DNA of 64,000 bases from Lepidodermella squamata (taxonomy: Eukaryota > Animalia > Gastrotricha). Under the pieces are notes generated by a model that saw only the letters and a program-made list of their open reading frames with translations, made no database searches and was not told the DNA's origin. The DNA is taken from contig JBLDXI010000007.1 of NCBI GenBank assembly GCA_047495785.1, positions 2,108,001 through 2,172,000 on the forward strand, in the 5' to 3' direction. The position numbers and the translations under genes were made by a program. Shown here piece by piece: positions 11,874 through 44,313 of this stretch (position 1 is the first letter of the stretch; every line of letters starts with the position of its first letter).

Positions 11874-12674
11874 TATCTGAACCGCCTGCCCTCCTGTTAC
11901 ACTGGCGCTACTCTGCGCCCACTTTTCCGGCCCGAGTATATCGAGGAAATCCGCGAGATTCCCCCGCTTCCTGGTAAGCAGACGTCGCCGATGGTGCTCG
12001 TCTTTCGAACGGCTGAGCATTACGAGGATGCCATGGCTAACGGTGTCAAGTTTCTGAATCGTCGCATTAAAGTCCACAAGTTGAAAAGCAAGGCTCTCCC
12101 GCCTACCTGTCTGAAGTGCGCCGCTTACGGCCATGTCGCTGTCGATTGTTCTCCGGACACCACGCAACGCTGCAGCCGCTGTGCTGCGACTGATCACACG
12201 ATTTCCACCTGTCTCGCTGAGCCTGAAGATCGTCGTTGCCCCCACTGCAGTGGCGGCGGTGAGCCTCATCATTCTGGTTCGTGGCGGGGCTGCCCTGCGT
12301 TCAAGACCGCCCAGGCTGACGAGGTAGCCCGTCGCCGTGCCATCGCCGTCGCCCGTGAAGCGAAAGCCGCCGAACGTGAAAAGCGTCGTCAACAAGCGAA
12401 GGTCCCCGAGCACCTGCGGGGTGGCCCCACGCACTTTCTCTCCACTCGTGACTTTGTCGGCGGACCAACGCCTGCTCCGTGGTCATCCCCTTCTCCTGCA
12501 CTCCGCGGTCACTTTCTGTCGCCTGATGGCGCCCGGCTCTTTAGTCTTATGGAAGAGCGGTTCCAGCGTATGGAAGCCGCTTTCGAGCGCCGACTCGACA
12601 CTGTCGGCCGCTTATTCGACCGGCTCTTCGCCTCCCCGCTGCCGCCACAAACCAGCTCGACTCGTAATGGCTAA
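11874..12674 (+). CDS. LINE ORF1 (gag-like), C-terminal part with three zinc knuckles
   Basis: CLKCAAYGHVAVDC, CSRCAATDHTISTC and CPHCSGGGEPHHSGSWRGC. The stop overlaps the ORF2 start by 8 nt. Confidence 0.9.
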   Translation, partial: YLNRLPSCYTGATLRPLFRPEYIEEIREIPPLPGKQTSPMVLVFRTAEHYEDAMANGVKFLNRRIKVHKLKSKALPPTCLKCAAYGHVAVDCSPDTTQRCSRCAATDHTISTCLAEPEDRRCPHCSGGGEPHHSGSWRGCPAFKTAQADEVARRRAIAVAREAKAAEREKRRQQAKVPEHLRGGPTHFLSTRDFVGGPTPAPWSSPSPALRGHFLSPDGARLFSLMEERFQRMEAAFERRLDTVGRLFDRLFASPLPPQTSSTRNG

Positions 12675-22590: not shown

Positions 22591-23126
22591 CTGGTTGGAT
22601 CACATTTCTTCGGATTTCTTTAACCCCATTCACAAGAAACATATTTGATTACTATTCTTATGGTGTTTTGGATTATCCTAAAGTTTTTTGGCCATGAGAT
22701 ATGACTTTGCCTCTCATTTTAGAGTTTCTGATCCCTTTTCCCCGTATTTTTTGTTTGCGTTAGGTACTTGTAGGTGGGATTGTGATTTAACAAGGCCTCT
22801 CTTCTACCGTACATTTTACCTCAATTTTTCTTTCGTTTTTCATCATTCAGCATTCATCATTACCAAGTATGCAACAATATCAAGCATTGTTTCCTAAACA
22901 AGTGGCCTGGGAATAATTTGCATAGAATAAGGAATAGAATCCACCCTAAATCGATATATACCAGCACCGCGTTATTAATATTTAAAACTCGCATCGACAC
23001 TTCATTATTAAGATGAGCTCGCAAAGAGACTTTCCCTCACACTCGTGCCGCGTAAATAATCGACAATGCCGGCTGCATCTCTAAAGGACAATTTCCTATA
23101 GTAATTTTCATTCACTGCCGACAAAC

Positions 23127-24703
23127 ATGAAAATTCTCACATTTTTGCCGAGGAATTTTCGCCAACCTTCTTTCTTTTCAATATTCCTGATTGCAGGTGT
23201 TTTCGTCGAGATTGCCGTCATTTTCCTATACTACTCGAGTGTGAAGACTCGAAACAATCTAGCCATCACCTTGAACCAACACCTTCCAAATGTCTTGAGA
23301 AGTAACCCAGGCAGCGCTGAGGAGGCCTTTAGAACCTGCCAATCCGCAAAGTTGTGGTGGTCCCAGCGATTTTTCCGAACTAAACGAGATAAGGACTCAA
23401 GCCCTGTGAGAGACTTTTCGAAAAATCCTATTAGAATAGGCGGCTCTAATTTCGACGAATCTTCCCTAATCAACAACTGCCCAGTTCCTTGCATTCACTA
23501 CCCACCAGAATCAAAGTTGAGCGACGAAGATAAGGGCATTTATTTCGACGCTAGTTTCGTGGAAGAACCCGGAATTGCTCGGGAAAAGCCTTACCTAGGC
23601 CTATCTGTCCTCCGAACCATGGAATCGAGTGTCTACTGCGAAAAATCTCGGTTAAAAGAGGCGAAATCTGCTTTTGACCTAGTTATGACGCCTAGACTTG
23701 ACAGCGTGTCCCTTACTTTTCATGGGAACTCTACGATATAATGAAGCCACCTCAAGAAAAAACTGCCGAGGCCCTGTCGTCAATTGTTGTCTCCAACTGC
23801 GAATCTCGCAACTTCAGACCAGAGGCTATTGAAGTCCTCGAGGACGAAAGCCGGCGATCTCCTGTGCCGATAGTCGAGGTCTATGGCTTATGTGGGCCTA
23901 ACCAAAAGCGGCTGGACTCTGACAAATTGGCAATCATGGGCAAGTACAAGTTCCATTTGGCCTTTGAAAACTCGAACGATATTGATTACGTAACTGAGAA
24001 GTTTTACCAAAGTCTAGCTGAAGGGACTGTACCTGTTGTCATCGGAGCTCCTAACATTCGCCTATTTCAACCCTCGAATAACTCAATTCTAGTCATCGAA
24101 ACCCTGGCTGAGGTCTTAAATATTGCGGATAAGATGCAACAACTCTCCGCTGATGAGAATGAGTATCAAAAATTGCTGGCGTGGAAGAAAACTGGTCCTT
24201 CGCAACAGTTCAAGGCCCTGGTTGATCTATCAGTGGTCCATTCAAGCTGCAGACTATGTATCAAAATTGCAGACCGTATCAGAGGTTTGGAGAGGGCAAA
24301 GTCGAAACAGCCAGAAGTCTGTAACTGCCAGCTTAACTCAACAACAATTGTCTTCCGGTTTCAAGTCCGAGAACGTGGCAGATTCAACTTCAGCGAAGGT
24401 TTCATCTACAGCTCAGAATTAACCTATCACCGCCTTAATCAATCGATTTTCGAGGCGGTAACTAAGGGCAAGGAGTACTGGCCGATTTGGAGTTGGGTCA
24501 GGGACGAAATTGGCCGTCGGCACCCGCAAGGAGCTTTCCCTCGTAAAAAACCGCCTACTTTCAACCTGTATCGAATCTACGAGGTCGGGACACCTCATGG
24601 TCAAGTTCTATTCGGTCGTTCGGCAATTGATTCCGACGAGAAAGTTGTTCGTCTCTTCAGCTCGAAAAAAGACTGCATCCAACTCGAAGTGATTTTTGTG
24701 TGA
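23127..24703 (+). pseudogene. Plant-type core alpha-1,3-fucosyltransferase (GT10) copy 1; intronless and frameshifted at ~23706-23711
   Basis: Type II TM, VLRTMES, [shift] PYFSWELYDIM, VSNC, YKFHLAFENSNDIDYVTEKFYQSL, VHSSCRLCI, VRERGRF, LYRIY, LEVIFV*. It is 7 nt shorter than the paralog at the shift. Confidence 0.85.
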
Positions 24704-24734
24704 CAAAAGTCTTTCATGAATAAAAAACAATGAT

Positions 24735-25931
24735 TTATTTTTGAGCCGGAATTTCGTAACCAAATAACTTGTAGTCAGTTGAAAATAGTTTAGTTAAGAC
24801 TTGAGAAACTAAATTACGAGGTAATTTGTCAAGTTCAGCAGTTACTAAATCCGGGAGAGGTTGTAGCACTGGTCCAAACTCCATTATTTGGTCCTTCCCG
24901 ACCAGTCTTTGGCTCAAATCTTGGAAGTCAGACGTGAAAGTCTCCAGACGGAAGCGGTGGTCGTATTTGATATCACAAGGCTTGCAGATGTCGTAGTAAG
25001 GCGTGAACAATCCACCTCCGAGCAGCACAGATTCGTCAGCTGGAGTCATCGTGTTAAGGAAAGTGAAAAACTCTTCGTAGGTAATGTCAGGCTGAGAGTA
25101 TGCTAAAATCGCCTTTGGTCGCATCTTCTTGATAATTCGCACAACTAAATCCTATAACAACAAATTCATATTAAGGCGAGTATTTGCCTGTGATTCCTAA
25201 TTACCGCTACAGGGTCGAACGAATATCTTGGCCGCATGATGTAATCATCAAGATTGCTATTCATCAGCTGTAGCACATCGAGTATTCGATTCAGGGGGTT
25301 TCCGACCAATGCAATCCATGTAAAACCTTTTGGAAGTCGCGGATTTGCCAATCGAATCGCTTGGTCTTCAAGGAGCATTAAACGCTTGGTCTCAAGGTAT
25401 TCCTGTTTCTTCGACTCTGCAGCTAGCATTTTCTGCAGGGCGCTAATTAGAGCTTCGTATTTCGGCGACGGACTTCCGATGAAGTCAAAGTAGTGCTGAA
25501 CAGCTTCGAAAGCTGGCTCGTCACGATTGCTGTGGAAGCATATAAAAATTGAGGGATATGCATGAGAAACCCTGTGTGCCTTACAAGCATACGATGAAAT
25601 TGTAGCGTTCGTTCACAATACTGTAATATAGGGAGTAATTGATCGTTTGGTTAGAAGCCATATCGGAAAAATCTTACAAATTCCCACTCAGAAGCATTTG
25701 CCCGAAAAAGTAAGGGTCATGCATTAAGGAAGCGTTGTAAGTTTTGTTTTGGCCCGCGCAAACGTCTGCCGCTTGAGATGGGAACTGGCTGTATGCATCC
25801 AGCCTTTGCCATTTGTTGGAAAGCCTTTCGAGTTGCCACTGTTTATACAGCCCGCGAAGGACCAGAAAAACTGGAACAGTTGAAATCAACGCTGCCACAA
25901 CTAACGCGGCTCGATACGGGGAAGCAGTCAT
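24735..25931 (-). CDS. Carbohydrate sulfotransferase-family (Sulfotransfer_2) type II membrane protein with degenerate PAPS-binding motifs; 4 exons
   Basis: N-terminal TM, IVNERYNFIVC, ITYEEFFTFL, CKPCDIKYD, RLETFTSD, DYKLFGY. The 5'-PSB position reads FNRDEPA and the 3'-PB position reads VGNPLNRILDV. Confidence 0.8.
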
Positions 25932-26502
25932 AATTGATCGAAAATCATCTGCTGTTTAACCAATTTTACCATCCTAAACAAACGGTCATTCGAAATGAGG
26001 AATTGTGCACAATTTGTGGACTAATGTGTGAAAAGCGTTAGCTAGCCAGTTTTTTATGCACAAATTTGAAACTCTCACAACAATGCGAATGCTAGACGTA
26101 CTGTAAAAGGAGACCACAGTTTCGCATACAGTGTGATCTTGTAAACAGCCTTTTGTGTTGTGTGTGTAATAAGTGCCAACGCATACCTAGATACTGCAAC
26201 AGCAAATGCAATTACAACGGCGTAAGGTTTAACCTGACCTCGCGTTGTGCTTTTTATGAGCGTAGATAGCCACGTTCCACCAGAAATGTCGCCTCTATCT
26301 AATCGATCGCTCATAAACGGGTGCGATTAAGGTGGATTAGATAATGGATACAACATTCGCACACTTTATTACAATTCAATAATATTACAAATGTATACGT
26401 TTGGTACGCTCAGTAATGCTATGTTAAGTTTGAGAGTCCCAATGGATATGTCTACGCCTTCAGTAACACAGCTAGTTCCAGACGTTGTTTACAGGCTAGC
26501 AC

Positions 26503-29065
26503 TTAAGTATTTAGCACCATGATTACTTTGGGCGCGAAGATCACACTAAAGCATAGTCCATGGATGGCGAAGATTCCCGCAAAAAATACCGTTTGAATAG
26601 TGCCAGGATCGCTATCTTTGAAAACGGCGACAATCAAAGCGCCACAAGCTATGAAAACTATGCCAATACAGTAGGTGACAGTTCTGGTGAAATGCAAGTC
26701 GTTGATTTCGTCGAGCTCAAACTTCTTCAAAGCGAAAACAAGATACAAAGAACGCAAGAACACCAGCACGTAGCAAATGACGAAGAAACCGATGAAGCCA
26801 ACAGAGATTGTTGAACTTGCCGCTATTTCACAGCCTATTTGATAGGGTTTGTAACCCAAACTCTCATGAACGATTTGAAGATCGCCATGGCGGACAGATG
26901 TTCCTATCGGCTCGATGGCGAACCAAAGACTCATAAATGCGATTTCGATAAGAACATACATGACCACAGCAATGCAGCAACGCTTGATATTTCGGTCGAA
27001 AAATTGACGGTCTATTATTGTTTTGACTTTTGGGGCTGGAGTCATCATCATGCTACTAGCACTTTGGCTAGGCCCTCGGCTATTAGCGCTGGCCCTAGGG
27101 GAGGGTGCTGGAGCTACCCCTAAACTAGGACGAGAAGCTCCGGATTTATTGGTTGAGGCTCTGGAATTATTCAGGTTTGCAGTCAAAGTCTTCGATTTAA
27201 CACCAGTGGCGTAGGCAAGATGGAGTTTACCCAACAAAGCTGCTGCTATCATCGTAAAGCCGATGGTGAATGAGAGGGACCCTGCCATACAGTACTTACT
27301 AGCTTCGTGACTAGAGGCCCGAGGGAAGATGAAGACCGTGCATACCATCAGAATGCTACCAACAAGTACGAGGGTGCTCAACTGTACCACTGAATTCTGT
27401 ATGATAGGAGATGATCTTTTGAGTAAGAAGATGAGTACTACACCCAGGTCCATTGTGAGTAGGATTGCTGCAATAATCGATACTACCACGTCTGTCATGA
27501 ACGTCATTATCGGGGCTTTGGTAGCAAGAATCCTGAGCGAGTCGGCCGGTGCCTGGCCATCCGTAGTTCTCCATTTGATGTTGAATGGGCCATATCGAAC
27601 TAGAACAGGGCTGTAAGTCGTGTCAACAGAACCAACAGGGTAATATCGGACCCGCTTTCGATAACTAAGTTTTGTGTCATCCGACACCTGGACTTGATAC
27701 ACCGCACTAAGGGCTTTGAAGCTGTGGATGGGTAGAGTGCTTTCGAGGGTGAAGCTTTCATACTTCAGATCTTCAGTTTCACTTCTAATAATAGAACTTA
27801 TGAGGTCTCCGTTTTTTCTAAAATTTCCGCCCGAGGTCAGCCAATCCTTAATGGTTCCTAGACCAGCTTCCGCCAAACGCGCCTCCGTTCGATTAAGCAC
27901 GACTGCGCCAGAAATAACCTCACTGTAATAATGATCGCGTACAAAGTGCCACTGCGGCAGAAATTCAGCGTCAGGAATTCTAGATTTCATCATACTATCG
28001 AAAACACGCCCTGACATGCCAACGACATCTTTTGCATCGGGGAATACATCCAACCTCTTGCCGTGAGAGAAGTAGATGACAGACTTCAATATCTCAAACA
28101 AATGATCTTCCGAGCAGAATGGAGGCTTAGCAGGCGAGTCAGGGTAGAAAATCGTGTTTCCATTGAAGAGTATGACATACTGCGAGCCGTAGAGCTTGTA
28201 TTTATACAAATAGCACGAAATTACGACTGTCATGGCTGTGTTGAAAATCATGACCCGAGGGTCGAGACTAGCCAGCTCTCCAATCACTTGACCAACTGCT
28301 TCGTGAGTTGGGAGATTAGTGCCATCGAACGTTATTCGTACTACCCCAGCAACAGTCATATTTACATCTTGCATACCAAGACTTATCGAATCGTCAAGAA
28401 ACTTGCGAGTTTGTAAGGTTTCAGTCAGAAGGAAAACCCTCCTCCAATTTTGCGAGGCGAGAAAGTACGGCAGCGCATTGTAAATAGCATCAAATGACGG
28501 CATCAAGCCCATCCTGGATCTCCCAACCGATACGGCCCAAGTTGTGAAGCTTATCACATTATTAGGGCCAAATGCTTGGCCAGCGAAAGTTCCACCTGGG
28601 CAGTGAGGACCCAGCATTAGTGGAGCGTAATTCACCTTACCGTTCCACATGTTGTCAAGCATTTTAATGAGCATATCGACGCCGAAAGCGGCATTACATC
28701 TGTCATCAAACAGCTCGATGACTATTTCGTAGTTCGAGAATAGATTCGTGGAATTCATTAGGGCGTCGAGAGCGATTTGAATGCCCTCAAATGCAAGAGG
28801 TCCATGGGCGTTTTGAAGACCAGCTGAAGACCAGAAAAAGAGGGTTATCACTGTTATTGAGCGGCGTAATAAACAAGAAATTACCGATGCTTCCAATAAG
28901 AGGGATCCTAATTTGAGTCCGCGACTTGTTTGATTGCAGTGTATTAGACATATTGGCTCTCATTATTTTCGGCCATTCCGACGGAGCTTGAGCAAAAACC
29001 AGCAGTGAGCTTGAGCAAATGGTTGCCAAAACGAAGATCCTTGTTAGTTCTAGATATGATTTCAT
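26503..29065 (-). CDS. GABA-B-like class C GPCR (Venus flytrap domain + 7TM); exons 29065-28885 and 28823-26503
   Basis: Signal peptide, DDRCN..., LGPHC, WRRVFLL, seven hydrophobic helices, INDL before TM6, FAPKV at the TM7 end. No cysteine-rich domain; long Ser-rich ICL2. Confidence 0.88.
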
Positions 29066-29606
29066 TTTCTAAAAGGGATGACTGATTTTTTTATCTTGCT
29101 GATCTTCAAATAGTTCAAAAACAAACGTCGCGAAACCTGACGCTGACCTTGCGAATAATTTTTCATCTTTCTGAGGGGGCGGTGGCTTGAATAGATGGAG
29201 GCGGTATGTTGTGCCTACATCAATTCAAGGGGCTCCTATGATGTTATTTCCGTGCGAATGATAGATTTACTGCTAAACTATGTTTCACTTTCAGCCGAAT
29301 ATGGCTGGCAACAAAAAGAAACTCAACACTTGAAAAGGTTCTATATCGAAGCTAGCGAAAATTATGTTCGAAGCTGGACGCTAATAGCTTGACATCGGAG
29401 AACCTGAAGTATTCTGTTGAAGTAGGATCTGTTTGGCACGAAGGCTGAAACCGCTTCAGTGTGGACAATAGTTCTGCATTTGATTCACATTGAGGTCTTA
29501 TTTCTCGAATGCTACAAAATAGCTTCGGCACAACTGTTAAATCTCAAAATGCTCCTGATGTGCGATATTTAGCTGATATTTACTTGGCATTTTGTATTCC
29601 ACTCGG

Positions 29607-32031
29607 CTAGGATTGCAAAACTTTCACATTTTTGCGAATATTAGGTACCACTAGAACACAAACAACAATTCCACAAATTGCTAATACACCCAGAAAAATG
29701 ATGATATCCAAGGTTTCTGGATCTGCCTCCCTGAAGAACGCTAGAATAGCGGTCGCCGCCGCAATTACTACGATACCAATGCTATAGCTCACAAACCGAG
29801 TCGAATGAATGTCGCTCAGTTCGGCTGTTCTAAACTTCCGCAGACAAAACACCAAATAAAGAGTTCTCAGATATAGCAGCAAATAAGATGCGGCAAGAAA
29901 TAAAGAGAAACCGATAGAGTGATTTGACCCAGCTGAGAACCTGCAACCATATTTCACGTCTTGTAAAGCCAGGCTTGGATTAACTACCTCCAAACTGCTG
30001 TAAAACAAGTAGGTTTCATATGGATCAGCTAGAAACCAAGCGGTTGTAACAGCCACGTGCATAAAAACGTAGCCCAAAGAAAGCAGTATAGTAGGCCTCT
30101 GAGACGCTTTGATCAAGCGAATTATTTCGGGATTCGGAGGCGTTAGTTTCTTCATCTGATTGGCTAACAACGCTGGCTGTATTGAGGGTTTGCTCTTCCG
30201 CTTTTCTTTAACAACAGTTTTGCTGTGGAAGAATGCAACGACGTATGCAACATGAAGATAACCCAGTAGTCCGCAAGAAATCAAAGAAATCCCTGCAACG
30301 ATTGTCGCAGCCCCCGCCATGCAGAAAAAGTGATCATTCGCCGATCCTTTTTGAGGGAAAAAAATTATGGAAATCGCTAAAATGATTGTGCCTAATGAGG
30401 TTAGCATAGATGTAGGTAGAGTGGAATCTTGATATTTCGGTGATTTGCGTAGGACCAAGCTCAAGAGTATGGATAGAAGGAGGATGGCGACAAGAATTGA
30501 CGCCAGAGTTTTGAAAATTATGCTTCCCAAAATATTCATTGCAGGTATATTTATCTGGTAAATTGTGAATCTGTCTAGAGGTGCACGTCCATCGAAGGTC
30601 CTCCATTTCACTTTCGCTGGCCCTTGCCCGTACTTGGGAGGTTCGAATTTTGTGTCGACAGTTGCAATCGGAACTGATCTGATGCGCTGGGTGAGGGGAA
30701 TTCTAGGGTCATCAATTGTTTGAACTTGATAGAAAGCACTTAGAGCTTTCAATGTCCGTAGAGGTTGTTCAGGCTCCATAGTGAAGCTATCAAAACGCAA
30801 GTTGATGACTTGTTCACGAATGACAGAACTTATAAATGTTCCATTTTGTTTGAATTTTTCTTTGTAAGAAACCCAGTCCGCCAGGGTCTGGCCACGGTCT
30901 CTAAGTAAAGCTTCTGTTTTGTTGAGCACAACAGCAGCAGCAACGACTTCTGTGTAGTAATGGTCCCGAACAAAATGCCAGCTGGGTAGAAACTCAGCAT
31001 TAGGAATCCTTGACTTTAATAATTCGTCAAATTGCCGACCAGTCAGTCCAAGAACATCTTTTAAATCTGGATATATATCAAGCCGTTTTCCATGTGAGAA
31101 ATAAATGACCGATTGAAGAACTTCGAACAACATTTGGTCACTGCATCCCGAAGGTTTGTTAGGAGCATCGGGTAGAAAAATTGCATTACCTGGTGCCAGT
31201 ATCACGTATTGAGGACCGAAAAGATTAAAATCATATAGTGCGCATGCAACACTCACTGTCAATGCAGTATTCAAAATTATGATACGAGGGTCCATTACTG
31301 CTAACTCGCCAACAGAGCTCTGGATAACTGAGTAGCTGGGTGGTTCCGCCCCGTCAAAAATTACTGTTACGACCCCGGCTAAAGTTATATTCAGCTTTTG
31401 AAATCCTTCCGCGAGAAATTCATTGAGTTTACGACGCGTGATGAGACTGTCGGCGAAGAGAAAAACGCGTTTCCAGCCGTTGCCGTTGATGAAATACGGT
31501 AAAGCCATGAAGACTGAATCAAAAGAAGGCATCAAGCCAAACCTGGAGTCGCCAACTGCTAGAATCCAGGTCGAGAAGCTGATTACATTATTGGGGCGGA
31601 AAGCTAAGCCTGCAAAGGTTCCCCCAGTGCAATGTGGACCCAGTATCAGAGGAAAATTATGCGAACCGCCTTCTGTTATGCCATTCAGGATTCTGACGAC
31701 CATTGAGACTCCAACAGCAGAGTTGCAACGGTCATCAGTTGTATCAATTTCAAGGTTGTAACTTGTGATAAGCGTCGAGGAATTTTGAATAGCCTCAAGG
31801 GCAATTTTGATACCCTCTGTGGCCAGCTGTCCATGTTCGCCTGAAATAACACGAAAATTAAGTTGACATCCCACATTGAGAGACAAACTCACGTTGATTC
31901 GCAATCAATGGAATCCTTAGAGGAACTTGATCTAACACCTTTCCGTCATCTTTCGCAACATATTTGAAGATTTGGGCATTCAGTGGAGTTGCTAGCAGAT
32001 AAATGACTGCTATGGACGATGCAAGAATCAT
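29607..32031 (-). CDS. GABA-B-like class C GPCR, tandem paralog; exons 32031-31893 and 31840-29607
   Basis: It shares blocks with the neighbour (DDRCN, LGPHC.GGTFAG, GLMPSFD, SVIYFSHGKRLD, WHFVRDHYY), has 7 TM helices, and has the same single intron position. Confidence 0.88.
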
Positions 32032-32443
32032 TTTTGCAAATTATGTGAGTTGAATTTGATGTCTCTAAGATCTGGTTGACGCCCCCAGAGAAAAATATGT
32101 GCAGCCGCCTGACAAAGTTTTGATTTGAGATATTGGCTAATAAATCACGATGAAGCACCAGACGCACATCAAAATTAGGATACCGACTACAGTGTGTGCA
32201 CCTGAGCATCTCGTACATTCGAAATATATCCCAAGCTCAAAAAATAACGCCTTGCTAAAACAGCGAAATGAGAGGCTTGAATACTAATGAGCAGTAATTA
32301 TTTTAGGGTGACAAAACTGATGGGCCGAAATAGCAGGATTTGAAAATGAAAGTGACGTAGATTTTTCGTGGGTTATAATCCGTCAGGTAATGTTTGAACT
32401 GGTAAACGATTACTGAAAGCGGCGTGTTCTTTTATTTTGAGGT

Positions 32444-33952
32444 TTATCTGCTAGAAAACGCATCAGGCATTGGATAATCGAATACGGCATAGTCCATCAG
32501 ATAGTATCGAGTAATAATATCACGTATTAGTTCTGGCGGAACTGTCCTCAAATCAGCTTTCTTATCAACGTAACGCTCAGGGGGCAGAGGAACTCTCGGA
32601 ACAGTTGTCGCACCGCTAGCTTGGCGGGCAAGGTACTCCAGCTCCGCACCGAAGCCGCCATTTTCCTTGCTATCTAGATGGCCGATGAAGTCATACCTGA
32701 GATGGCAAGGGAGGCAGTTGTGCAAGTAAGGCCGCCTACATGAGGAAAAGTTCTTATGCAGTCCAAACTGATCAAATCAACACTTACCAATGATGATCCC
32801 ACTGTTGAGCATTTTGATCGACTAATTTCATAAATTCGAACAATTCGCTCAAAGCAACCGGGTAACCACGCTGGATCTCTTCCTTTGTTGCATTTTTCCG
32901 CACATTTTTTATCACAGTTCTTCCCAACTCCTATTGGAAAGGACCATTCAATATTGATCAAGAAAGTTTTCTCGAAGAGGACCTACCATTTGATAATGCC
33001 TGTTAGCCGATGGCATTCGAGATGCTGGCTCTTTGGTCAGCTTATCTTTCCAGGAGGAGACAAATCTTTCAAGCGGATCACGGACCAGCATGACTCGCTT
33101 GTAACTTGGATCGTTCAGCATTTGGAGCATTTTCTCTTTTGGGTAGTGAATCAACCATTTGAGGTGCGGAGTAGTGAAGTTGCGGGAATGAACCTTATTC
33201 ACTGCTGTTCGGTTGTAGCTGTAAGATTTCGTCAGCGACTCACTGATTTGAATGAGATAATTCAACAGATTTGTCGTTCCAACCTTGTAATTTCTAATGG
33301 GCAAAGGACATAGGAATTATGAGCAGCAACTTATATGCAAACTTACAGGCAGACAATCATTTTGTACTTTTCATTTACCATACTGGAAAATTGAAAATCT
33401 CAGATAATTCAGACTAAGATGTTCAGCAGTATCTTACTGAGATCTTGACCTCAAAATTGACAGCAGCAGATTATCGTCAACGGTAGCTTTCGGCTTTCCA
33501 TAATAAATATTGCAGATTTCAGCAGCTCGGTGTTTCCTCTTCTCGATCTCCTCCTCAATCCGTTTGTCCTTGATTTGATCCAGCTCGGCTAGACCCGGCT
33601 CCTCAAGTTTCGAAGATGGCTCGTAGACAGACTGTATATAGCTGTCTTCCCCTTGTCCTTGGTTGAATGCGTCCTGCGTCTTCTGCTCAGACGGTTGTTT
33701 GTAAGGAATAGAAATCGTTGCAAGCGAACCGAAGTCGTCATCTCTCTCTACGGCTTCATCTAGATCAGCATCGTAGTTTACTTCCTCCCGATGAAGGGCG
33801 CCAACGTTTTTATCTTGAAATGCGGGTAAAATCCTGCTTTCGGTCTTTCTGTTGTTTGGAAACAGAGTCTGGACTGCGGTTTTGAAATTCGCGAGAACCA
33901 AAATGGCGATCACAGTAATTGAAATAGCTTTGATTAGCATTCTTCGATTCAT
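32444..33952 (-). CDS. Carbohydrate sulfotransferase (CHST/HNK-1-type, Sulfotransfer_2); 5 exons
   Basis: Type II TM, spliced CLNYKVGTTNL (5'-PSB), VRDPLERFVSSW (3'-PB), WDHHWRPY, CLPCHLRYDFIGHLD, YLMDYAVFDY. Confidence 0.9.
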
Positions 33953-34354
33953 AACGTCAGCAAAGCATGACTTTATGCAGCATTCCCTACTTTGAAAACT
34001 TTAATAAAAGCTAAGAAATAGTTTAATCTTGGAGTGCATATATATTAAATATAATAAAAGTGTTATCTGCGTAAGACTAGACTACAACACAGTGTGTGCT
34101 CATAGCACTATTCAGCGTAGACTGCAATTGTCAAGAGAATGACCGCAGTCATTTCATGCCACAACACACCTGTAGATGTGTTGTTATTTTAACAATTTCT
34201 ATTCTCTCGTCTCAACGTTATTTGCTGCTATTTTAGCCGCATTTGAATACCAGGCTGCTTTGTGCTGTGCAAAAGCGCGGGATAAAAAGAAACCACTCGT
34301 CTTTGTTTTTTTTGAACGCCAAAATCATTTATTAAAATTTATAAAAAAATAATA

Positions 34355-35005
34355 TTAAGAAGAATGTAATTTAAACCCAAAAAGTTCGTAAGCGATTGCA
34401 GAGAAATTGATGTTTCGACTCAGTGACCGGATTTGTTTCGTCAAAGCAAGCCGTGGCAACACTGTTGTAGAGCTCGGGGCCTCATTTAATAGTTCAGATC
34501 TTGCTTGCACGGGTCGAATGGATTCTTCGCCATCTTTCTGCATGAGGTTCTTTCCTGTGTTGTGGTCCACATCGATCTGACGATACTGATTGAAGTCATC
34601 CATTCCAAGTTTGAAATCACCAGCTTCTAACTTGAGCGGCACAACATGTTCTCGAACGGGTGATTTTTTCTTGAAAGTTGAATGGCAATAAGGCCTCAAC
34701 ACAGCAATTTGTCTCGGGCGTCCTTTAGATGATGCCTTTATCTGGAGAACAGGAATGAATTCTTGATTTTCTTGTCCAAAATTACTTACAGATGAAGAAT
34801 GAGAGATTTTTGGCTCGGGTTTGCTTACAGGAATTATTGTTGATTCCTCCCCCTTCAGATACAAGAAAGCTCGATACAGCAATTCAATCCAGATCATTAT
34901 CCATATTAGAACTACAGCTCTTAGGGTGGATCTAAGAAGATGCACTGAGAATTTCACCGCCCCACTGATGGATGGAAGCTGCCATCTAAAGAATCGTTTC
35001 AGCAT
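34355..35005 (-). CDS. Hypothetical protein with an N-proximal hydrophobic segment
   Basis: 216-aa ATG ORF with a TM-like stretch (AVVLIWIMIWIELLY) and AATAAA downstream on the minus strand. No recognised family. Confidence 0.5.
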   Translation of the reverse strand: MLKRFFRWQLPSISGAVKFSVHLLRSTLRAVVLIWIMIWIELLYRAFLYLKGEESTIIPVSKPEPKISHSSSVSNFGQENQEFIPVLQIKASSKGRPRQIAVLRPYCHSTFKKKSPVREHVVPLKLEAGDFKLGMDDFNQYRQIDVDHNTGKNLMQKDGEESIRPVQARSELLNEAPSSTTVLPRLALTKQIRSLSRNINFSAIAYELFGFKLHSS

Positions 35006-35533
35006 AATGCGTATTTGTTGTGCTTAGTCAGGTTGAGCTGCAGTATGCACGGCCACTTCAGACCAAGAAATAATCTCTCTGGCTTTATCGTAGAATCTCC
35101 CTTAAATGCTGTGAATATGAGCGTATGTTCTGACGTGTTAATAATGTGAACGTATTTTTATCACGTTTTTCTCGACCATGCGAGTAAATAATGCACTCCA
35201 TCAGCATATTGTGATACAAGATACAACGTGACCAGGCATCGCTTGTAAAAATAATGAGCGGATCTCCCTCGCAACCCCTAGAGTTAAAATATGAGATTTT
35301 GTAATGTTCTGGTTAGTTCTATTGCTCAAATGCCAGTTTGGCCTGAGTTCAATAAGTACCCAAGCAGAGTATCATATAAAGACAACCTTATCCTACGTAG
35401 AATCGATAGCTTTCCGCATGACAGGAAGTTCGGGAGCACATCAACGCTGAAACAGCGTTTTAAGAGGAAATTTAGTATTTTTCGTAAATAATCGCTCAAC
35501 TACAATATCTGCTGCTAGCCGTGGCATCCATCG

Positions 35534-36043
35534 ATGGTCACAGCAGAATCTGTAACTTTAACCCCTGATTATGCATCACCAATTTACACGCTCGAAGAGC
35601 AGCCTCCGTCTTGCCGTAATATTTTGTTGTCCCGTGAATCTTTGCCTAGAGTCCTTGCCGAGGTACCTCCGGTTCCAAGAGCACCGTATCCGGACAGGTT
35701 TATACCGATGAAACATTCCCCACTGCGATCTGTGTTCTCAGCGCCGAATCTTGGAGCTTTAAATAAGCGTAATCCGAATCTTGTGAGGCCGCGAATAGTC
35801 GTGACAGATACAGATAACATCGACCACGAGGTGAAAAGGGTTCGAAAAGCTGCAATCGCTTTGGCTGTTATCTCTTTCCTCTTCGGCATTTGGTTCTTTT
35901 CAGTGCCTGGAATCGTCCTAGCGATGAAGAAGGCGAATAAAACTCGCATTTACTTCATTTCACTCAGCCTATCTGCTGTCGGAATATGCATTGGGATTGG
36001 AGTAGGGGCGAGGCTCATGACACTTTTCTCTGGGACAATATGA
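35534..36043 (+). CDS. Dispanin/CD225 (IFITM/PRRT-like) membrane protein
   Basis: Pro-rich N-terminus followed by two hydrophobic segments (LAVISFLFGIWFFSVPGIVLA; ISLSLSAVGICIGIG). Similar to 43703-44281 and 49765-50130. Confidence 0.6.
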   Translation: MVTAESVTLTPDYASPIYTLEEQPPSCRNILLSRESLPRVLAEVPPVPRAPYPDRFIPMKHSPLRSVFSAPNLGALNKRNPNLVRPRIVVTDTDNIDHEVKRVRKAAIALAVISFLFGIWFFSVPGIVLAMKKANKTRIYFISLSLSAVGICIGIGVGARLMTLFSGTI

Positions 36044-36594
36044 TGACTTTGAATGCTGAGTCATTTTGACAGCAATTTTTCCACTGTCATGGTTTTTTCG
36101 AAGTAAAAAGGCTGGATTATGCAGAGGCCGAATCGTGATTTTTTGAACTGTTTCGATTTTTGCTTCAACAGGACGAAAGACGAACTACGAAGAGGGAGCC
36201 AATGAACCGGATGGCTGCAAAATGCGTACATTTTAGATGCATTTTCATTGATAGAGAGGCGCAAAGTGACACCCGTCTGACTCAATGTGAGTTATTTTTA
36301 AAACCCGACATCACTGTTTCAAAAAGAGCCCAAGAAAGTACAACTGTAGCATCTAAATCATCAGCAATCCTACATATCTTTCAGATGACGAAGCACTGCA
36401 TCCGGAAACCAACGTTTTTGTGGATTTTTTGTTAACGCAGGTGAAGCTTTTATTACTCACGAATTGGTAAGAAATTCATATGCTTTAGCACAACAATTTA
36501 ACCTCAGCACGACAGACAGACATTTTATGGTATATAATCGCGCGAAGCGGCATTTACGCATGAAGTTTTTCAATCGGTGCTGAGACATTCTGAG

Positions 36595-36885
36595 ATGAAA
36601 GAACCACAGGAAAAGAGCTCCACTTCAACAGCTATCAAATCAATATCAGACGGTTCGTACAACATCGACACTATTTCACGCGAATCGCTGGATAATGCAT
36701 TCAAACCTGTCAATAATCCTACCTACATCATCAGATTGAGTAGTCATGACAACTTGGTATCTACCTCAAAAACCGACCACAGCAGGCTATGGCACCACCT
36801 AGTTGTAACTTTACTGGTGTTTACAATTTTTTTGGTTTTAACTGCAGTGATCACTCTTGTTTTGATCCAATATAATTTTCAATAA
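36595..36885 (+). CDS. Small tail-anchored membrane protein
   Basis: Hydrophilic N-terminus and a single C-terminal TM. The stop codon lies within AATAAA. Confidence 0.55.
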   Translation: MKEPQEKSSTSTAIKSISDGSYNIDTISRESLDNAFKPVNNPTYIIRLSSHDNLVSTSKTDHSRLWHHLVVTLLVFTIFLVLTAVITLVLIQYNFQ

Positions 36886-37333
36886 AACAACTGATTGCAT
36901 TTTATTCCCACAGAAGTATTCCCACTGTGAAAGGGAAGCAAATATTGGGTTGTCTCATCTCGATCTATTGATTTGCGCAAATTCAAAACCATATATTGAA
37001 TCGCGTGCTCTGGGCAAATTATACATGTTGACAGATCTGTAGAGTTTTGCTTCATGAGTGGGAGATCAAAACGGAACCGCCACTCCACTACCGGTCTTCA
37101 TTCAGCGGAGGCGCATAAATAATCTCAATAAAACAAGTGGTCACAAAATTATGTATGATCAGCCATCACCGGATGAAAGCTCGTTCTGATTTGCATAGAC
37201 CAATTCAATAGGAAACTTGGATTTTTACATTTTTCTCCGAACCCGTAGCAGAATGCATTCACAATCTTTATCAGCTATGAATTAGCGTGAGAGCAGTTGT
37301 TCACCTTACTAGAAGAAGAACTAGATTAACTAG

Positions 37334-39018
37334 ATGAAGAAAGTTTCGAAGATTTTTATTGTGATCGGGGCCGAAATTGTTTTATTCATCGGACTTTTGG
37401 CCATCGCAAGCATAGACACATTGGACGAGAATGTCAGTTTCATGTCACTAAGCACCAGCAGCCCGCGCCTGAATTCTCGTAGCAGAAAATTAGCCAACAA
37501 CTCTTTAGCTTGGGGTGCCATGTCTGGGCGATTCGCTGCGTATGACGCAAAACGGCGTCAGTTTAACAAATTTTACTCTGCTCGTAAGTTATCCAGCAGG
37601 GATTTCAAGGCCCAGCCTGTTGTGATCGGCAACTCAGATTCAGTTACGATCGCTCAAGAGGTCACTGATTGCGACATCAGGTAGGCATACAACATCTGTC
37701 ACAATATCATTTCGAATAATTATGGCTTCTATAAGGTGTATCTTATTGCCCTCGGTAGAACAAGAGGTAGTAACTGGTGAGCAGCCTGATATGGACGCAG
37801 CTTTCACCCTTTGGCCCTTCGAAAATCGATCGACTGTGTTATCCGTGTATCGTTCGATGGAATCAGCAGCATACGTTAAATTGAATGACCTCGAGACTGC
37901 CAGGCGGCTTTTCGATGTTGTGATGACTGTTCGCCTCGACAGCGACGTGCCAGTTCCTTACTTTTCATGGGCTCTCCACGACTACATGGCTCCTCCGAGG
38001 CGAAAATCAGCCATCGCTCTATCGTCTGCTTTCATTTCAAACTGTGATGCAATGAATTTCCGATTGAAAGCTGTTGAAAATCTTCAAAGTATATCTCCAG
38101 TATTGGTCGATTTTTTCGGCGGCTGTGCGCAGTCACTATACAGACGTAGGCGCAACGCCCTGTATGAGCAGAAAGAACATATCATCGGTAGATACAAATT
38201 TCACCTAGGTATGCCAGGAATTAAGTTGGATTTTGATTGCTTAGTTTTTCTGTTTTGCAGCATTTGAAAACTCGATCGAGACCGATTATGTAACTGAAAA
38301 GTTCTTCCAGGCCCTAAAAGAAGGCACTGTGCCTGTGGTCATTGGTGCGCCTAATATCGCAGATTTTCAACCTTCGAATCAATCAGTACTCGTTATAAAC
38401 ACCTTGGAAGACGTTCAAGCCGTAGCTAATCAAATGATCTCATTGTCGCAAGATGACTCGGCTTATGAAGCCTACCTATCCTGGAAAACAACCGGTCCAT
38501 CTGCTCAATTCCTGGCCCTTGTAGACCTTGCTAATGTTCACTCGAATTGTCGACTATGCATCCATGTGGCTGATCGCATTCGGCAGGCTGAATTTAAGCA
38601 AATTTCAGCCTCAGGCTGCATGTCTTACGGTAGTCCGTATCATCTTCATTTCTTTGTTCGAGAGCGTGGGAAATTCGACTTTCTCGACGCGTTCGTCTCA
38701 ATTGAGCAAGTTAATCTCGATAGCATTCAAACCGCTATCTCAGAAGCTTTTAGCTTCAATTCTGAAAATGACCCACTACAGCCGTTTTTATATCGACCAA
38801 TCTGGAGCAACTTTCGCGACGAAACAGGAAGAAGGTTAAACTCAACTATAGCTCACCCACGTTTCAAATTATACAAAATTTACGAGGCTCTCGGGCCTGC
38901 TCAACTAGCAAATCAAAGAGGTGCTTTGTACGGCGATGATGCTTTGGACTCTGATGTAAAGGTGACGCATTTATTTCAAAATCGTGAATGTATCTACCTT
39001 GAAGCAATTCTAATATGA
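37334..39018 (+). CDS. Plant-type core alpha-1,3-fucosyltransferase (GT10) copy 2, intact; exons 37334-37680, 37736-38208, 38261-39018
   Basis: Type II TM, SVYRSMESAAY, DSDVPVPYFSW, AFISNCDAMNFRL, YKFHL|AFENSIETDYVTEKFFQAL, GAPNIADF, WKTTGPS..F.ALVDLANVHSNCRLCI, VRERGKF, LYKIY, CIYLEAILI*. Confidence 0.9.
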
Positions 39019-39080
39019 GTCAAACATTAAAATTGGCGGCGCCTGTAAGCATTTAATGCCATTTTTCATTCGTGAATGAG

Positions 39081-42000
39081 TCACTTGGGCAAACTGGAGC
39101 TGGAGCTTGGCTCCGAGTCTAAACCTGTTTCTTTAGAGCCAGTGTTGAGGGAACCGGGCTGAGAGTCGAATTTGGATCCTGGCTGTGATGGAGGCTGGGA
39201 ATCATTGTTCGGAGCGGGAGTAGAAATCTCTATCTTTGGCATATCTTTATTGTTAATACGTCTCTTCGGTCGAGTTTGAAGATAATAGCCTTGCCGGAAC
39301 TGCAATGACGAACAAATTGGAATGATAATGCAAATAGGCCTAAAACAAACTTACCTTAGGTAAAAATACTGTCCCTAGGCTTATGCACACGATAACAACG
39401 GAAGTGAATGCGATGCCGGTTTGAACAACACTTCCGTTGTTGTTGAAGAAACAGGCAAGGAGAGTGGTTGCGGCAAGTACGAATATGCAGGTACAATAAG
39501 CGGATGTCGACACCAAGTGCAAATCATTCATGTACTCCAGTGAGCTCTGATGAATTTTAAAATAGTTGGATATCATTACTCAACTAAATTCCTTACCGTT
39601 CGAAGATAGAAAGCAAGTGGTATTTGCCTTAAAAGCAATATGGCGTAAATTGTAGCGAAGAGCCCGAGCAGAACGTTTGACGCAAGAGTCGGAGGGAGGG
39701 CACAGACCCTGGTATAATGCTGAATTCGAATGCTATCAACTGCATTTTCGAAGTAATTGTCCACAACTGAAACAGTAAGAGGCTCTACGGTAAACCAGAT
39801 GATACTATAAACCAACATGATCGAAGGGCCGATAGTGCATAGCGGTCGCAGCTTCTTTTTGTAGTCTTCAACACGCTTTCTCTCCCGCTGCTTGAGCGCC
39901 TCTAGATGCGTAGAACGCTGTTTCGATGACCAGTTGCTGTTGAATTTCATTCTTTTTGCTGATTCAAACTTCAGAGTAATAGTTTCACGGATCCAAATAG
40001 CTGCCATCATTTTGACTGACATGGCTGTTATAAGATTGATAAGCCCGATGTTGAGTAGACCAATTGTTGCCATGCACCTTGTCGAAGTGACATCCTGAAA
40101 CTCCGCTGGCGTAGCTAAAACGCCCAGAAGCAAAAACGTATCACTCATTAGAATCTGATAGTTTTGCAGCGGGAATGAGTTCAAAACTGCGCGGTTCTTC
40201 TGGCGAACTTTGACTGCATTGATAGCCGAAATGCAAAAGATTCCAACAAGCAAAGTGGCTGCGATAACTATTGGATTTCAAGAACATTATTGAACAAGAA
40301 ATATTTGGTATATGGACTTGCCTAGCAATATTGTACGGATTGAAGGAGAGATTAAATTATTGCCGATAACAATAGTTCGAATGGAATCATAAGGGGGTTT
40401 GCCTGATTTGGTTTGCCAGATGACTTTTCCTGGGGTATAAAACCACTTTCCTGAGTAGTTCCTCCAGTACGACCCGACCTGCTCAACTTGGATCGTTTCT
40501 ATCAAGTTACTTGTCCCATTCGAACGGCTCCTAATCTGATAAATTGTGGCGTTCCTAATCGCCTTGCTTGCACCGGTAACGTTGTCGAATTGCAGATCAT
40601 ACCCTAGCAGGGTTTTGTATCGGAGCCTATGCAATTCATTTTTGAAAGCTCCCTCAATAACTTGACCATTGTCGCGGAAATTCTTGCTGCCAGTTGCCCA
40701 ATCAATCAAGCTTTCGTTCCCTGAATAAATTACTGAGTTGAAAAGTTAAGTAGATAGCTAAAATAACTTGAATTCAAATAAGATTCCGTAGCATTTAGAA
40801 CTAAGCCACTCGCAACGATTTGGCTGTAGCAATAAGTTCTCCACTCCCACCACAAAGAATTCGTTTCTGGACGTTGAATGCTTGATTTCAAGCGATTTTC
40901 GAAGTCCCGAACCGTCATTCCGAGAGAATCACTCTGAGCTCCTAAAGGATCATCATTCGCCGCGGATGAGAAATCATACAGAAAAGTACTAAGCAAAATC
41001 TAGAAACAATAAGATGCCAATCTCCACCGAATCTAGTTGAAATCAACCCACCTTGAGCAGCATTGCCTCTGTGCACCAGCTTAGCTTATGGCTTCGGTCG
41101 TTCGGGTAATAGATTCCGTGGCCTTCTATAAGGAAGACGTAGCCACTTCCCGATATGTTGTAGCGGTGGAACCAGCAAGCAACTGCGGCGGTATGATACG
41201 TGTTAATCAGAAATATGTTAGAGTCGAATTTTATTGTTTCGACTACAGCAGATTCGAAATCCATCGAAGTTGGATCAGCGTCAGCAACCACCTTTGTAAC
41301 TCCTGCGATCGATATGTTGCGCAATTTCAGCTCCTTGGTAATGCACCCTTCAACCTGTTGAGCAAAACAAGCATTTTTAACACGTAAAATGGAATTTTGA
41401 AGCCAACTTCTTGCCAATAGCTGGTTGACTCAGATATCACAGCAATTTTTCTCCATCCCATTGAGTTGACGAATTCGGCGAGAGCTTGATAGGTGACTTC
41501 TGCCGGCGGGTTCATTACATAAAGATTGCGATACGCATTTCGCATTGATTGAACCTCACGAACTGGCGATATGGCTGTGATCTGAGATGCATTAAAATGG
41601 GATGAGAAAGCCAAGAAATACTGAAAAATCATACTACCCCAATCATCTGATAATGCTGAAGCATCCGCCCAGTGTATCGATGGAGGGAGCACATTGGCCC
41701 TGTCATAATTGGGACACGGTTGATGCCCTGGTCCTCCGAATTAAACCGTCTAACAATTCGCTCGACGCCAGGGTACAGGTAACACTGAGATCGATCAGAG
41801 TATAACAAAAATTATACAATAGGAAAAAATGCTCACCGTATCATCGATAAGCTCTGCCGCAAGCTCGTAATCAGGAAGAACATTGGCCTGCTCTAGGGCA
41901 TCTAGCCCGATCCGTAAAGCTTCAGTGCATAGTGGTCCTAATGGATATATCGATCCGTCTTCAATGAAAACATAGATTGAGATCATGAAGCAATGTCGAG

Positions 42001-42178
42001 ACGAAGTCCTACCGTAATTAATGGATGCTAAGATGTTCAGTCGCACTTTCCCGCTCCTCAAGCCACCTGAGGATGTTATGAGGCCCGGCATTGGTAGAGT
42101 CCAGTTGAACTTCGAATGCTGAGCTTCGATAACTGTGACGAAAGTCGCGAAGATTAAGATTGTATGACACAAGGTCAT
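39081..42178 (-). CDS. Divergent GABA-B-like class C GPCR; 10 exons, including a GC-AG intron at 40268-40321
   Basis: Signal peptide, LPDYELAAELIDDT|C, TGPMCS, GWRKIAVI, 7TM region, YMNDL, VFLPK, Ser-rich tail. All junctions keep the frame. Confidence 0.82.
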
Positions 42179-43077
42179 TTTTCCAAATTATATTGCAAAC
42201 GACTGGCCGTTTTGCAGGCTTTCTAAGATTATGGGATTCATATTCCGCTGCTCTTTGAAGCTGACAGGTCTTTGCCTCGCATTTAATTAACGTTAATAGG
42301 AAAGTCATTCTTGTTGTCAATTTTCTTGATGGTTCCGCACTTTCCGGGTGTCTTAAAATCCTCCTCAAATTACTTGAACCGACAACCCGATTTCATTCAT
42401 CCTCAAGATTGAACTTGAATATTAATAAGTTCCAAGTTAATTATATCGTTATAAATAAACCCAAGACGTCGGATTGCGAGGTGCGCAGATAATTCGAAAC
42501 GCAGCAGAATGATTGGCCAACGGTTATTGATGCTCGATGAAATGACGTAGGTACCCATTCCTGATGCTGATATTTCTGTATGAATCATGACGCTTGCGTT
42601 CTGCTTTGTAAATTGAAGTCATTGTTGAAAAACTTATTAACGTGGAAGGTGTAAGTTGTTGTCAAATAACGATACTTATGCCGGTATATACTTTTGACCC
42701 CAAGTTCAAAAACTTCGTCACGTTAAAGCTAGTATTATAAATTAGTGAGTCGACTGCTTTGAACAACTATGAAATTTTTAAGGCGACAATTTAATCTAAT
42801 TTAAAGTTTATGAAATATGCCGGGGTCAAACGTGAGTAAATGACTCAAATTTTCATATGATTAAAAGGCACGCCTCTTAGCCATTCTTGTTTGGCTATAG
42901 GACATACTATGATATATACAGTATGCACATACTATGATGAGTAATGTTCACGAAAAATGAACGCCGTTCATTGAGGACTCAATTTGCGGCAATACTTTCC
43001 ACGTTCCTTACACATAAAACGGTTGAAAGATTGCAAATAAAGCTGCTACAAGGAATATATAATAACTTCTCCCAACA

Positions 43078-43401
43078 ATGAGCTCATCTTCCGGCTTTCA
43101 TGCGTCACCTCTGACTCAGGACATTGAGCCGTTCGATGGGATGACAAGCATTTTCCCTGGCAGCAACTTGGATTCAAAGGCTCCAACTGCCGGCGACATC
43201 AATGGTTCCCATATCTTCGTCACTTACCCGCCGAATGATGCCGAAAATGACGATGACATTCCGGATGTGAAGCTCGTCGAAAGCGAAACTGGTTGCAAGA
43301 AATCAAATGTTAAATGCATCATTTTCTCAATCATGTCAGTGTATCTATTGCTCAGCTTTGTTATTATCATCCTTGTCTTACATGGCTATGATTATATATG
43401 A
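43078..43401 (+). CDS. Small tail-anchored membrane protein
   Basis: Acidic hydrophilic N-terminus, C-terminal TM (CIIFSIMSVYLLLSFVIIILVL), TATA-like sequence just upstream, AATAAA at ~43422. Confidence 0.55.
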   Translation: MSSSSGFHASPLTQDIEPFDGMTSIFPGSNLDSKAPTAGDINGSHIFVTYPPNDAENDDDIPDVKLVESETGCKKSNVKCIIFSIMSVYLLLSFVIIILVLHGYDYI

Positions 43402-43702
43402 AAAGCATTTAGGATGCACCCAATAAACAACTAATTACCTAAAATAGGTACATTTGTGCATATTTAGGTATCTTGTATTCAATAAAACGCGCAGATGAAA
43501 TTTCAATGACATTTTATCCTGGAAAAGACCAGGTGGATAGTAAATCTTTTGATCAAAAGAACTTCCATTAATGAAGTTGCCACGCTACAACATGCGCAGT
43601 GCATTGAAAAACCAGGTGCGTATCCCATTTCTGGTTCATCTATAAGACTACACGAACTCGTCCCAATTCTCTCTCATATTTAGAGGTTATGTTAGGCTTG
43701 TT

Positions 43703-44281
43703 ATGGTTGCACCAAACGAGCCTAAACCATCGAGCACTGGCCGGTCCCGAGTCGTTAATGCCGGGTCTAATAACAGCAATGCCTCCCCCAGACTACCCGA
43801 ACCCCCATCCTACAACGACGCCGTTCGAAACCGGCCGCCCTCGATCGCCTACAACGCAACATCCCCGATTCAACCGCAATATCCGACACCCGGGTTCTTC
43901 TCACCCTACCCAACCTATCAGCAAATGGGGCAGAACCCTCATATGATGACACCCCATGGTCGCATGTCGATGATGGCGGCTAGTTACGGCGCCGGGATAG
44001 CGCCGTATCACGACGAGCTTGAAGCGGCGGGTGGTGTGGTTGTAGTCGATGACCCGCAAATTCTAGGCATGCGCCGCGCCGCGCTGCCCCTCGCAATAAT
44101 TGCGCTCATCTTGTGCGCGTGGCCGTGCGCCATGCCGGCGCTCATTTTCGCATGCCGACCGCCCGGCGTCGCTTCCCGCAACGAATACCGATTGGCAATC
44201 ATCCTGGCTGTGCTCGGCATCGTCGGCGGCCTTATCACAGCCGCCCTACTCGTACTCAGATTTTATTTTAGATATTGGTGA
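43703..44281 (+). CDS. Dispanin/CD225 (PRRT-like) proline-rich membrane protein
   Basis: PPSY (PY) motif, P/Q/Y-rich N-terminus, LAIIALILCAWPCAMPALIFA, then a second TM. Confidence 0.7.
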   Translation: MVAPNEPKPSSTGRSRVVNAGSNNSNASPRLPEPPSYNDAVRNRPPSIAYNATSPIQPQYPTPGFFSPYPTYQQMGQNPHMMTPHGRMSMMAASYGAGIAPYHDELEAAGGVVVVDDPQILGMRRAALPLAIIALILCAWPCAMPALIFACRPPGVASRNEYRLAIILAVLGIVGGLITAALLVLRFYFRYW

Positions 44282-44313
44282 ACAATATTTCAGTAAAAAA
44301 ATGAATGATTTTA

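Follow-up and report, generated by a model that had tools for sequence, protein, structure and literature searches.

Core α1,3-fucose is the plant and invertebrate epitope behind anti-horseradish peroxidase (anti-HRP) staining and carbohydrate cross-reactive allergy. Drosophila FucTA and C. elegans FUT-1 make the same core α1,3-fucose epitope as the plant enzyme AtFUT11, and animals with this epitope are generally taken to rely on branches of the glycosyltransferase family GT10 that belong to them. The structure of AtFUT11 was solved only in 2026, and the part of the chain called its 'extension' (residues 348-501) is an acceptor Rossmann subdomain (PMC12929593). The catalytic base of the enzyme is Glu158 in the motif RSMES, and its G0 N-glycan acceptor is contacted by D120, M157, Y163, Y192, E197, H361 and S362 (PMC12929593). 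Here we describe two GT10 genes in a window of 64,000 nucleotides from the gastrotrich Lepidodermella squamata (contig JBLDXI010000007.1, positions 2,108,001 to 2,172,000), within which all coordinates below are counted. Gene A (23127-24703, plus strand), delimited by its open reading frames (ORFs) and by Pfam PF00852, is an intronless fucosyltransferase gene; it has about 525 codons and encodes a membrane anchor at the N-terminus. Gene B (37334-39018, plus strand) is intact, and its predicted splice model gives an open frame of 525 codons. The evidence taken together makes it probable that A and B are two old paralogues of an AtFUT11-type GT10 expansion specific to the host lineage, long resident in the genome and not derived from streptophytes, with an ancient transfer slightly favoured over vertical descent as their ultimate origin.

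Both genes were assigned to Glyco_transf_10 (PF00852, curated cut-off 23.9 bits), gene A with 101.6 bits (E 5e-29) and gene B with 30.9 bits in exon 2 and 69.7 bits in exon 3 (E 3e-19), which bears out the two GT10 genes that the first-pass annotation had placed at these positions. Their N-termini carry a hydrophobic anchor, as in type-II Golgi enzymes. HMMER aligned gene A to AtFUT11 (PDB 9S6A) over chain residues 103-361 at E 2e-63 and gene B in two parts, exon 2 at E 1e-27 (chain residues 52-178) and exon 3 at E 9e-42 (182-356); for the greater part of its N-terminal subdomain gene A was aligned by MAFFT alone, and gene B by HMMER. An AlphaFold model of a 333-residue piece of gene A, taking in the last stretch of the N-terminal subdomain and then the donor domain and the C-terminal portion, reached a predicted local distance difference test (pLDDT) score of 92 and was superposed by Foldseek on 9S6A with a template modelling (TM) score of 0.82 over all 334 columns. 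About 130 residues follow the CRLC motif in the window proteins, and these are predicted to fold as in AtFUT11. The C-terminal motif set reported in the first-pass annotation is present in both genes, namely VRERG(R/K)F, PIW, Y(R/K)IY and an end directly before the stop codon of C..LEVIFV in one and C..LEAILI in the other. Its WK.GPS motif was found as well, with a spacing of two residues (WK..GPS) rather than one. The SDVPVPYFSW motif it had listed for both genes is complete in gene B; in gene A it is disrupted in the window allele by a gap of 7 nucleotides and intact in contigs from other sequencing runs.

The layout held in common with AtFUT11 comprises the donor Rossmann domain and the C-terminal acceptor subdomain in both genes, together with an N-terminal subdomain bearing the catalytic Glu. 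Identity to AtFUT11 is 40-47%. The cysteines of CxxxC and CRLC are kept, as is an end of LEVIFV type, whereas the clade of the window genes has its own insertion of 5-9 residues with a GRR/GRQ motif after PIW, private to that clade. With the Lewis-type enzymes (human FUT9, H. pylori FucT and mango FUT13) the likeness consists of the GT10 donor domain with its FEN...YVTEK motifs and of inverting guanosine diphosphate (GDP)-fucose α1,3/4 transfer. By sequence, mango FUT13 (7YRO, E 6e-10), human FUT9 (8D0O, E 3e-7) and H. pylori FucT (2NZW, E 1e-4) were matched in the donor domain only, over 76-115 residues. The gene A model was superposed on the same three over 145-196 columns with TM scores of 0.33-0.41 (0.37 for FUT9), the predicted structural match stopping before its C-terminal subdomain. 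Besides, Glyco_tran_10_N (PF17039) reached 22.8 bits in gene B only, below its cut-off of 28.7 bits. Membership of the Lewis-type GT10 enzymes (FUT3-7, FUT9, HpFucT) was rejected on this sub-threshold score and on the long part that follows the donor domain. A shape search of the ESM Atlas gave a full-length match to a streptophyte cluster only, and an Atlas feature search with the C-terminal part alone returned no usable match. These results support the assignment of A and B to the AtFUT11 (plant) type rather than the vertebrate Lewis type, as the first-pass annotation had held.

The RSMES motif of gene B was aligned to 9S6A chain residues 68-72, which correspond to residues 155-159 of AtFUT11, and gene A has RTMES in the same column, so that the RSMES reported earlier for both genes stands for gene B and is replaced by a variant in gene A. 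Residues kept in both genes are E158, M157, Y192, S218, N219, R226, K256, N271, E280, K281, H361 and S362 (AtFUT11 numbering). Those among them that bind GDP-fucose are S218, N219, R226, K256, N271, E280 and K281; R248 lies in a loop that is not safely alignable. From these residues, the predicted activity of A and B as GDP-fucose transferases is well supported, and their specificity for the core N-acetylglucosamine (GlcNAc), by analogy with AtFUT11, is likely but not secure. Both would be type-II Golgi membrane proteins with the layout of the plant enzyme, in which the N-terminal subdomain would supply the catalytic Glu (R[ST]MES), the Rossmann domain would bind GDP-fucose, and the acceptor subdomain would complete the C-terminus up to LE[VA]I[FL][VI]. 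The reaction would be an inverting transfer of fucose from GDP-fucose to the 3-OH of GlcNAc; as with AtFUT11, the most probable target is the GlcNAc in the core of N-glycans.

The breadth of the family was examined in named databases and in metagenomes. The best 120 named-database matches are plant and charophyte core α1,3-fucosyltransferases with 42-44% identity at E of about 1e-65, covering 99% of the query including its C-terminal part. They are outscored by three ENA metagenome proteins, P0001-P0003, with 47-52% identity. An exhaustive search of 1.84 billion representatives yielded 80 clusters at E<1e-30, and the C-terminal subdomain is present in most of the best 150 representatives of at least 300 residues. 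Labelled members of the family come from Closterium, Chara, Spirogloea, land plants, Rozella allomycis, Heterosigma, Stephanodiscus and Pinguiococcus, and more distantly from Acytostelium. Two members from Closterium (P0123 and P0124, 1126-1141 residues) carry 600-800 extra N-terminal residues. No named animal protein was present among the 120 best named-database matches or the roughly 31 labelled representative clusters, no targeted search of animal proteomes having been possible, and Drosophila FucTA and C. elegans FUT-1 are not among the labelled members of the 150 closest clusters. A scan of JGI metagenomes gave no family member closer than 39-41%. A limited scan of viral contigs gave no member either, and it therefore lends no support to a giant-virus vector. 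Weaker metagenome loci consist of long bacterial-type ORFs, most of which end directly after the donor motif.

The metagenome members of the window clade lie on compact contigs, where their neighbours are genes encoding teneurin-type EGF, INTS15, CCSMST1 and HMG-box domains; the first three we take to be mainly animal families. The ENA sample that is the source of P0001 (ERZ27333047) also holds a contig, L083, whose positions 1-4443 are collinear with window positions 51950-59120 at 70-90% amino-acid identity. The gene concerned is RapGEF-like, with cyclic nucleotide monophosphate (cNMP)-binding, PDZ and RasGEF domains, and occupies 7.2 kb in the window and 4.4 kb in L083. Judged from this sequence likeness, ERZ27333047 contains a species fairly closely related to the host, one whose introns are shorter, and at least one metagenome member of the clade thus comes from a sample holding a relative of the host. 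The paralogues A and B appear to predate the divergence from that relative. A further contig, L002, carries at 435-4101 two tandem AtFUT11-type genes (583 and 591 residues), in both of which long insertions separate the donor domain from the C-terminal subdomain, and it is this pair that adjoins the INTS15, CCSMST1 and HMG-box genes.

A phylogeny was inferred with IQ-TREE under LG+C20 with posterior mean site frequencies (PMSF) from 52 rows and 441 columns, and constrained topologies were compared by the approximately unbiased (AU) test. The window clade, with support of 99/99, comprises gene A with P0002 (100/96), gene B, P0001, and P0003 with the L002 protein L002b. It sits in a clade of 44 rows (100/99) together with streptophytes, Rozella, stramenopiles and eukaryotes of compact genomes. 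In the 52-row tree the window clade has no supported sister and is not nested in any donor clade. A and B are 44.6% identical, about as distant from one another as from plants, and each groups with different metagenome proteins, so their paralogy must be very old. On this count a recent tandem duplication was rejected, and with it the simple duplication after transfer that the first-pass annotation had put forward. A broad metazoan clade in species order was not recovered in the maximum-likelihood tree. As far as these sequences allow, the family extends across several eukaryotic supergroups, and the window clade is one of its deep branches.

For the origin of this branch, a single ancient transfer from a non-plant eukaryote into the ancestors of the host has close to an even chance, and we lean slightly towards it over vertical retention with many losses, as it is the parsimonious reading of a patchy family distribution. 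The fuller scenario, in which a non-plant microbial eukaryote was the donor and the gene then grew into a large, deeply diverged family with host introns and a private repertoire of fucosylated glycans in the host lineage, we hold tentatively, at somewhat less than even. The foremost alternative, a plausible but less probable one, is vertical descent: an AtFUT11-type GT10 would have been present in the opisthokont or eukaryote ancestor and retained by Rozella and the host lineage, while almost every other animal group lost it. Such descent is consistent with the occurrence of the family in Archaeplastida, stramenopiles, Rozella (Holomycota) and, more distantly, Amoebozoa, with a window clade as deep as the other major branches, and with the AU test, which does not reject its grouping with Rozella (p=0.095) or with the Rozella group (p=0.143). 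Nor does either gene bear a compositional trace of transfer when compared with its neighbours, or an intron trace when compared with Brachypodium. It would, however, require many independent losses in Metazoa and Holozoa, and the absence of named animals from the matches and labelled clusters above tells against it. The unconstrained tree does not unite the window clade with Rozella, and introns are missing from gene A and its metagenome relatives, a common trait of acquired genes.

The Rozella allomycis protein (EPZ31356.1 / RKP20571.1) and the homologues P0125 and P0129-P0142, from eukaryotes of compact genomes, have the full architecture, fall in the same 44-row clade and share the VPVPYFSW motif; like gene A they are intronless. 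They differ in forming separate polytomy branches, and a union of the window clade with Rozella was neither recovered nor rejected. The contigs of three environmental relatives, placed on other arms of the polytomy, are eukaryotic, compact and poor in introns, and they do not resemble animal genomes, panB being one of the genes they carry.

Several points weigh against the reading of A and B as old, resident, non-streptophyte paralogues of AtFUT11 type. A taxon could be assigned to only about a fifth (approximately 31) of the 150 representative clusters, and the tree was built without chlorophytes, holozoan protists and the canonical animal core fucosyltransferases (FucTA, FUT-1, FUT10/11). 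Because the 44-row clade has a polytomy for its backbone, the tree can demonstrate neither a donor nor vertical descent. Three acceptor contacts of AtFUT11 are changed, D120 being Leu in A and Glu in B, Y163 being Cys in A and Val in B, and E197 being Leu in both, and the exact acceptor may therefore differ from that of the plant enzyme. Finally, the window allele of gene A has a broken frame.

In the window, gene A appears as two ORFs in different frames (23127-23741 and 23741-24703). Set against gene B and P0002, its nearest match in the databases, it shows the 7-nucleotide gap between 23706 and 23707 on the plus strand, inside the SDVPVPYFSW motif. With these letters absent the motif is read as LDS and VPYFSW in two frames, and a stop follows at 23739-23741. 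Contigs of three public runs were aligned to window positions 22900-24900. A 608-nucleotide contig of run X1, over 23439-24039, has 7 extra letters behind 23706 that restore the frame, and 7 extra letters are found at the same place in a contig of run X2, which derives from a different, more diverged organism. With the 7 letters the reading frame of gene A is LDSDVPVPYFSW in the X1 and X2 contigs. The X2 contigs, possibly of RNA, are about 100 nucleotides long, come from a relative diverged by 5-10% and cover coding parts only, a pattern that DNA of a relative would show equally. Behind the gap in the window stands either a null allele of recent date on one haplotype or an error in the consensus, between which the contigs cannot decide.

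In run X1, two haplotypes were seen at 23439-24601, one equal to the window and the other differing at 13 of about 600 and at 19 of 260 positions (2-7%). This points either to very high heterozygosity or to diverged homologous copies. The X2 contigs on gene A (23195-24438) are all of about 100 nucleotides and contain 'opposite strands' joints, a feature better put down to the assembly of a run with low coverage than to biology.

It is unlikely that gene A is a dead pseudogene and that the window has one working gene only. The frameshift and stop caused by the missing letters are what would suggest it, and against this the alternative X1 allele and the X2 relative are both in frame, and the gap itself may be no more than a null allele of one haplotype or an error of the consensus. 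The 33 coding differences listed at gene A between haplotypes or strains fall on either side of the break and divide into 25 synonymous and 8 non-synonymous ones, from which it follows that the locus has, by the pattern of these substitutions, been under purifying selection. Apart from the gap, gene A is free of stops and frameshifts across its 525 codons, and every catalytic and donor residue is kept except for F216V, a backbone contact.

Gene B is divided into three exons on the plus strand. Exon 1 of the splice model (37334-37680) carries the start codon, the membrane anchor, the stem and the first Cys of the CxxxC pair. Intron 1 (37681-37735, 55 nucleotides, GT-AG) lies in phase 2 in codon 116. 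Exon 2 (37736-38208), matched to chain residues 52-178 of 9S6A, encodes the N-terminal subdomain with RSMES, which holds the catalytic Glu, and SDVPVPYFSW, and the start of the donor domain (FISNC). Intron 2 (38209-38260, 52 nucleotides, GT-AG) is in phase 1 in codon 274, inside the sequence HLAFENS at its A. The remaining donor domain (FENS, YVTEKF, CRLC) and the C-terminal subdomain, ending in LEAILI and the stop codon, are encoded by exon 3 (38261-39018), the exon with the Pfam match at E 3e-19 and the 9S6A match at E 9e-42. The spliced product aligns with its relatives across both exon junctions. Introns of neighbouring host genes measure about 48-57 nucleotides, and those of gene B are thus of host size, as had been noted for one of the two genes. 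Gene A, the Rozella gene and the metagenome genes are all intronless.

A transfer from a green plant or other streptophyte into the animal, followed by duplication to A and B, is very improbable. It was suggested by the best named matches, all of them plants, and by the comparisons with solved structures and with Atlas shapes, in each of which the top match is again from a plant. Plants top the list largely because they are so heavily sampled, and P0001-P0003 score higher. The green-lineage donor proposed in the first-pass annotation did not survive the AU tests, in which union of the window clade with seed plants (p=9e-6) and with all sampled streptophytes (p=0.006) was rejected and sisterhood to the embryophyte clade was marginally rejected (p=0.031); streptophytes alone as one clade were acceptable (p=0.24). 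The embryophytes form their own clade at 100/100, with the window clade outside it and outside the streptophytes, and A differs from B as much as from plants. Comparison with a plant gene, which the same annotation had suggested, revealed no shared intron position: neither intron of gene B matches any of six Brachypodium introns. A recent plant transfer was accordingly rejected, on the AU tests and on the embryophyte clade that excludes the window clade.

Gene A is followed by a carbohydrate-sulfotransferase-like gene (Sulfotransfer_2; 24735-25931, minus strand, identified as an ORF and by Pfam), convergent with it and with 31 bp between the stop codons. Next lie two paralogues of class-C G-protein-coupled receptors (GPCRs; 7tm_3; 26503-31904, minus strand, found by Pfam), 43% identical to one another. 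Behind gene B there is a third class-C GPCR paralogue (39081-42000, minus strand), multi-exon and convergent, whose last exon is 62 bp from the gene B stop; it was found by tblastn of the first GPCR against 39000-47000. Both distances agree with the 31-62 bp to animal genes given in the first-pass annotation. Animal-type genes in the same 64 kb comprise two Sulfotransfer_2 genes, the three class-C GPCRs, an M13 peptidase, an AIG1 GTPase, a PDZ-RasGEF and a long interspersed nuclear element (LINE). Contigs of run X1 span both boundaries of gene A, one of them, over 24572-24900, joining it to the sulfotransferase, and the G+C content, the G+C content at third codon positions (GC3) and the codon usage of both genes are within the range of neighbouring genes.

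Contamination or misassembly, by which GT10 genes of an alga or plant would have been mixed into the sample, has hardly any probability left and was rejected, in line with the first-pass annotation: in its favour are the plant-like best named matches only, and against it are the immediate sulfotransferase and class-C GPCR neighbours together with the M13 peptidase, RapGEF and LINE of the same 64 kb, the independent X1 contigs across both boundaries of gene A, the host's composition and intron size, and an identity to any plant protein of just 42-44%. Genes A and B are long-resident host genes, because they have the composition of the host, gene B has introns of host type and gene A bears the signs of purifying selection.

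The region downstream of gene A (24735-33952, minus strand) holds in order the sulfotransferase, the two class-C GPCRs and a second sulfotransferase, and after gene B comes the third class-C GPCR. The same families thus stand convergent behind both fucosyltransferase genes, an arrangement that may go back to an old segmental duplication or may represent a neighbourhood of glycan enzymes and receptors. The LINE, with endonuclease and reverse-transcriptase domains (11862-15536), has a G+C content of 0.54-0.58 compared with a background of 0.38-0.45. An Rfam search of the window gave no match. With the RasGEF ORF as query, metagenome proteins alone were returned, full-length relatives lying beyond the length filter, and the M13 peptidase drew from the Atlas no more than a generic label with Arthropoda as the commonest taxon.

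An animal lineage with diversified enzymes of AtFUT11 architecture extends the known range of that architecture, and N-terminal fusions to AtFUT11-type fucosyltransferases are seen to occur in charophytes, as in the two Closterium proteins. The locus is also a cautionary case for calls of horizontal gene transfer in the style of an alien index, in that the tree and the AU tests show a deep independent branch. For the study of the enzyme itself, the host lineage supplies natural variants at three acceptor-contact positions, D120, Y163 and E197. If the reading of an ancient transfer is true, the host lineage would possess an enzyme type otherwise unknown in animals and, with it, a private repertoire of fucosylated glycans.

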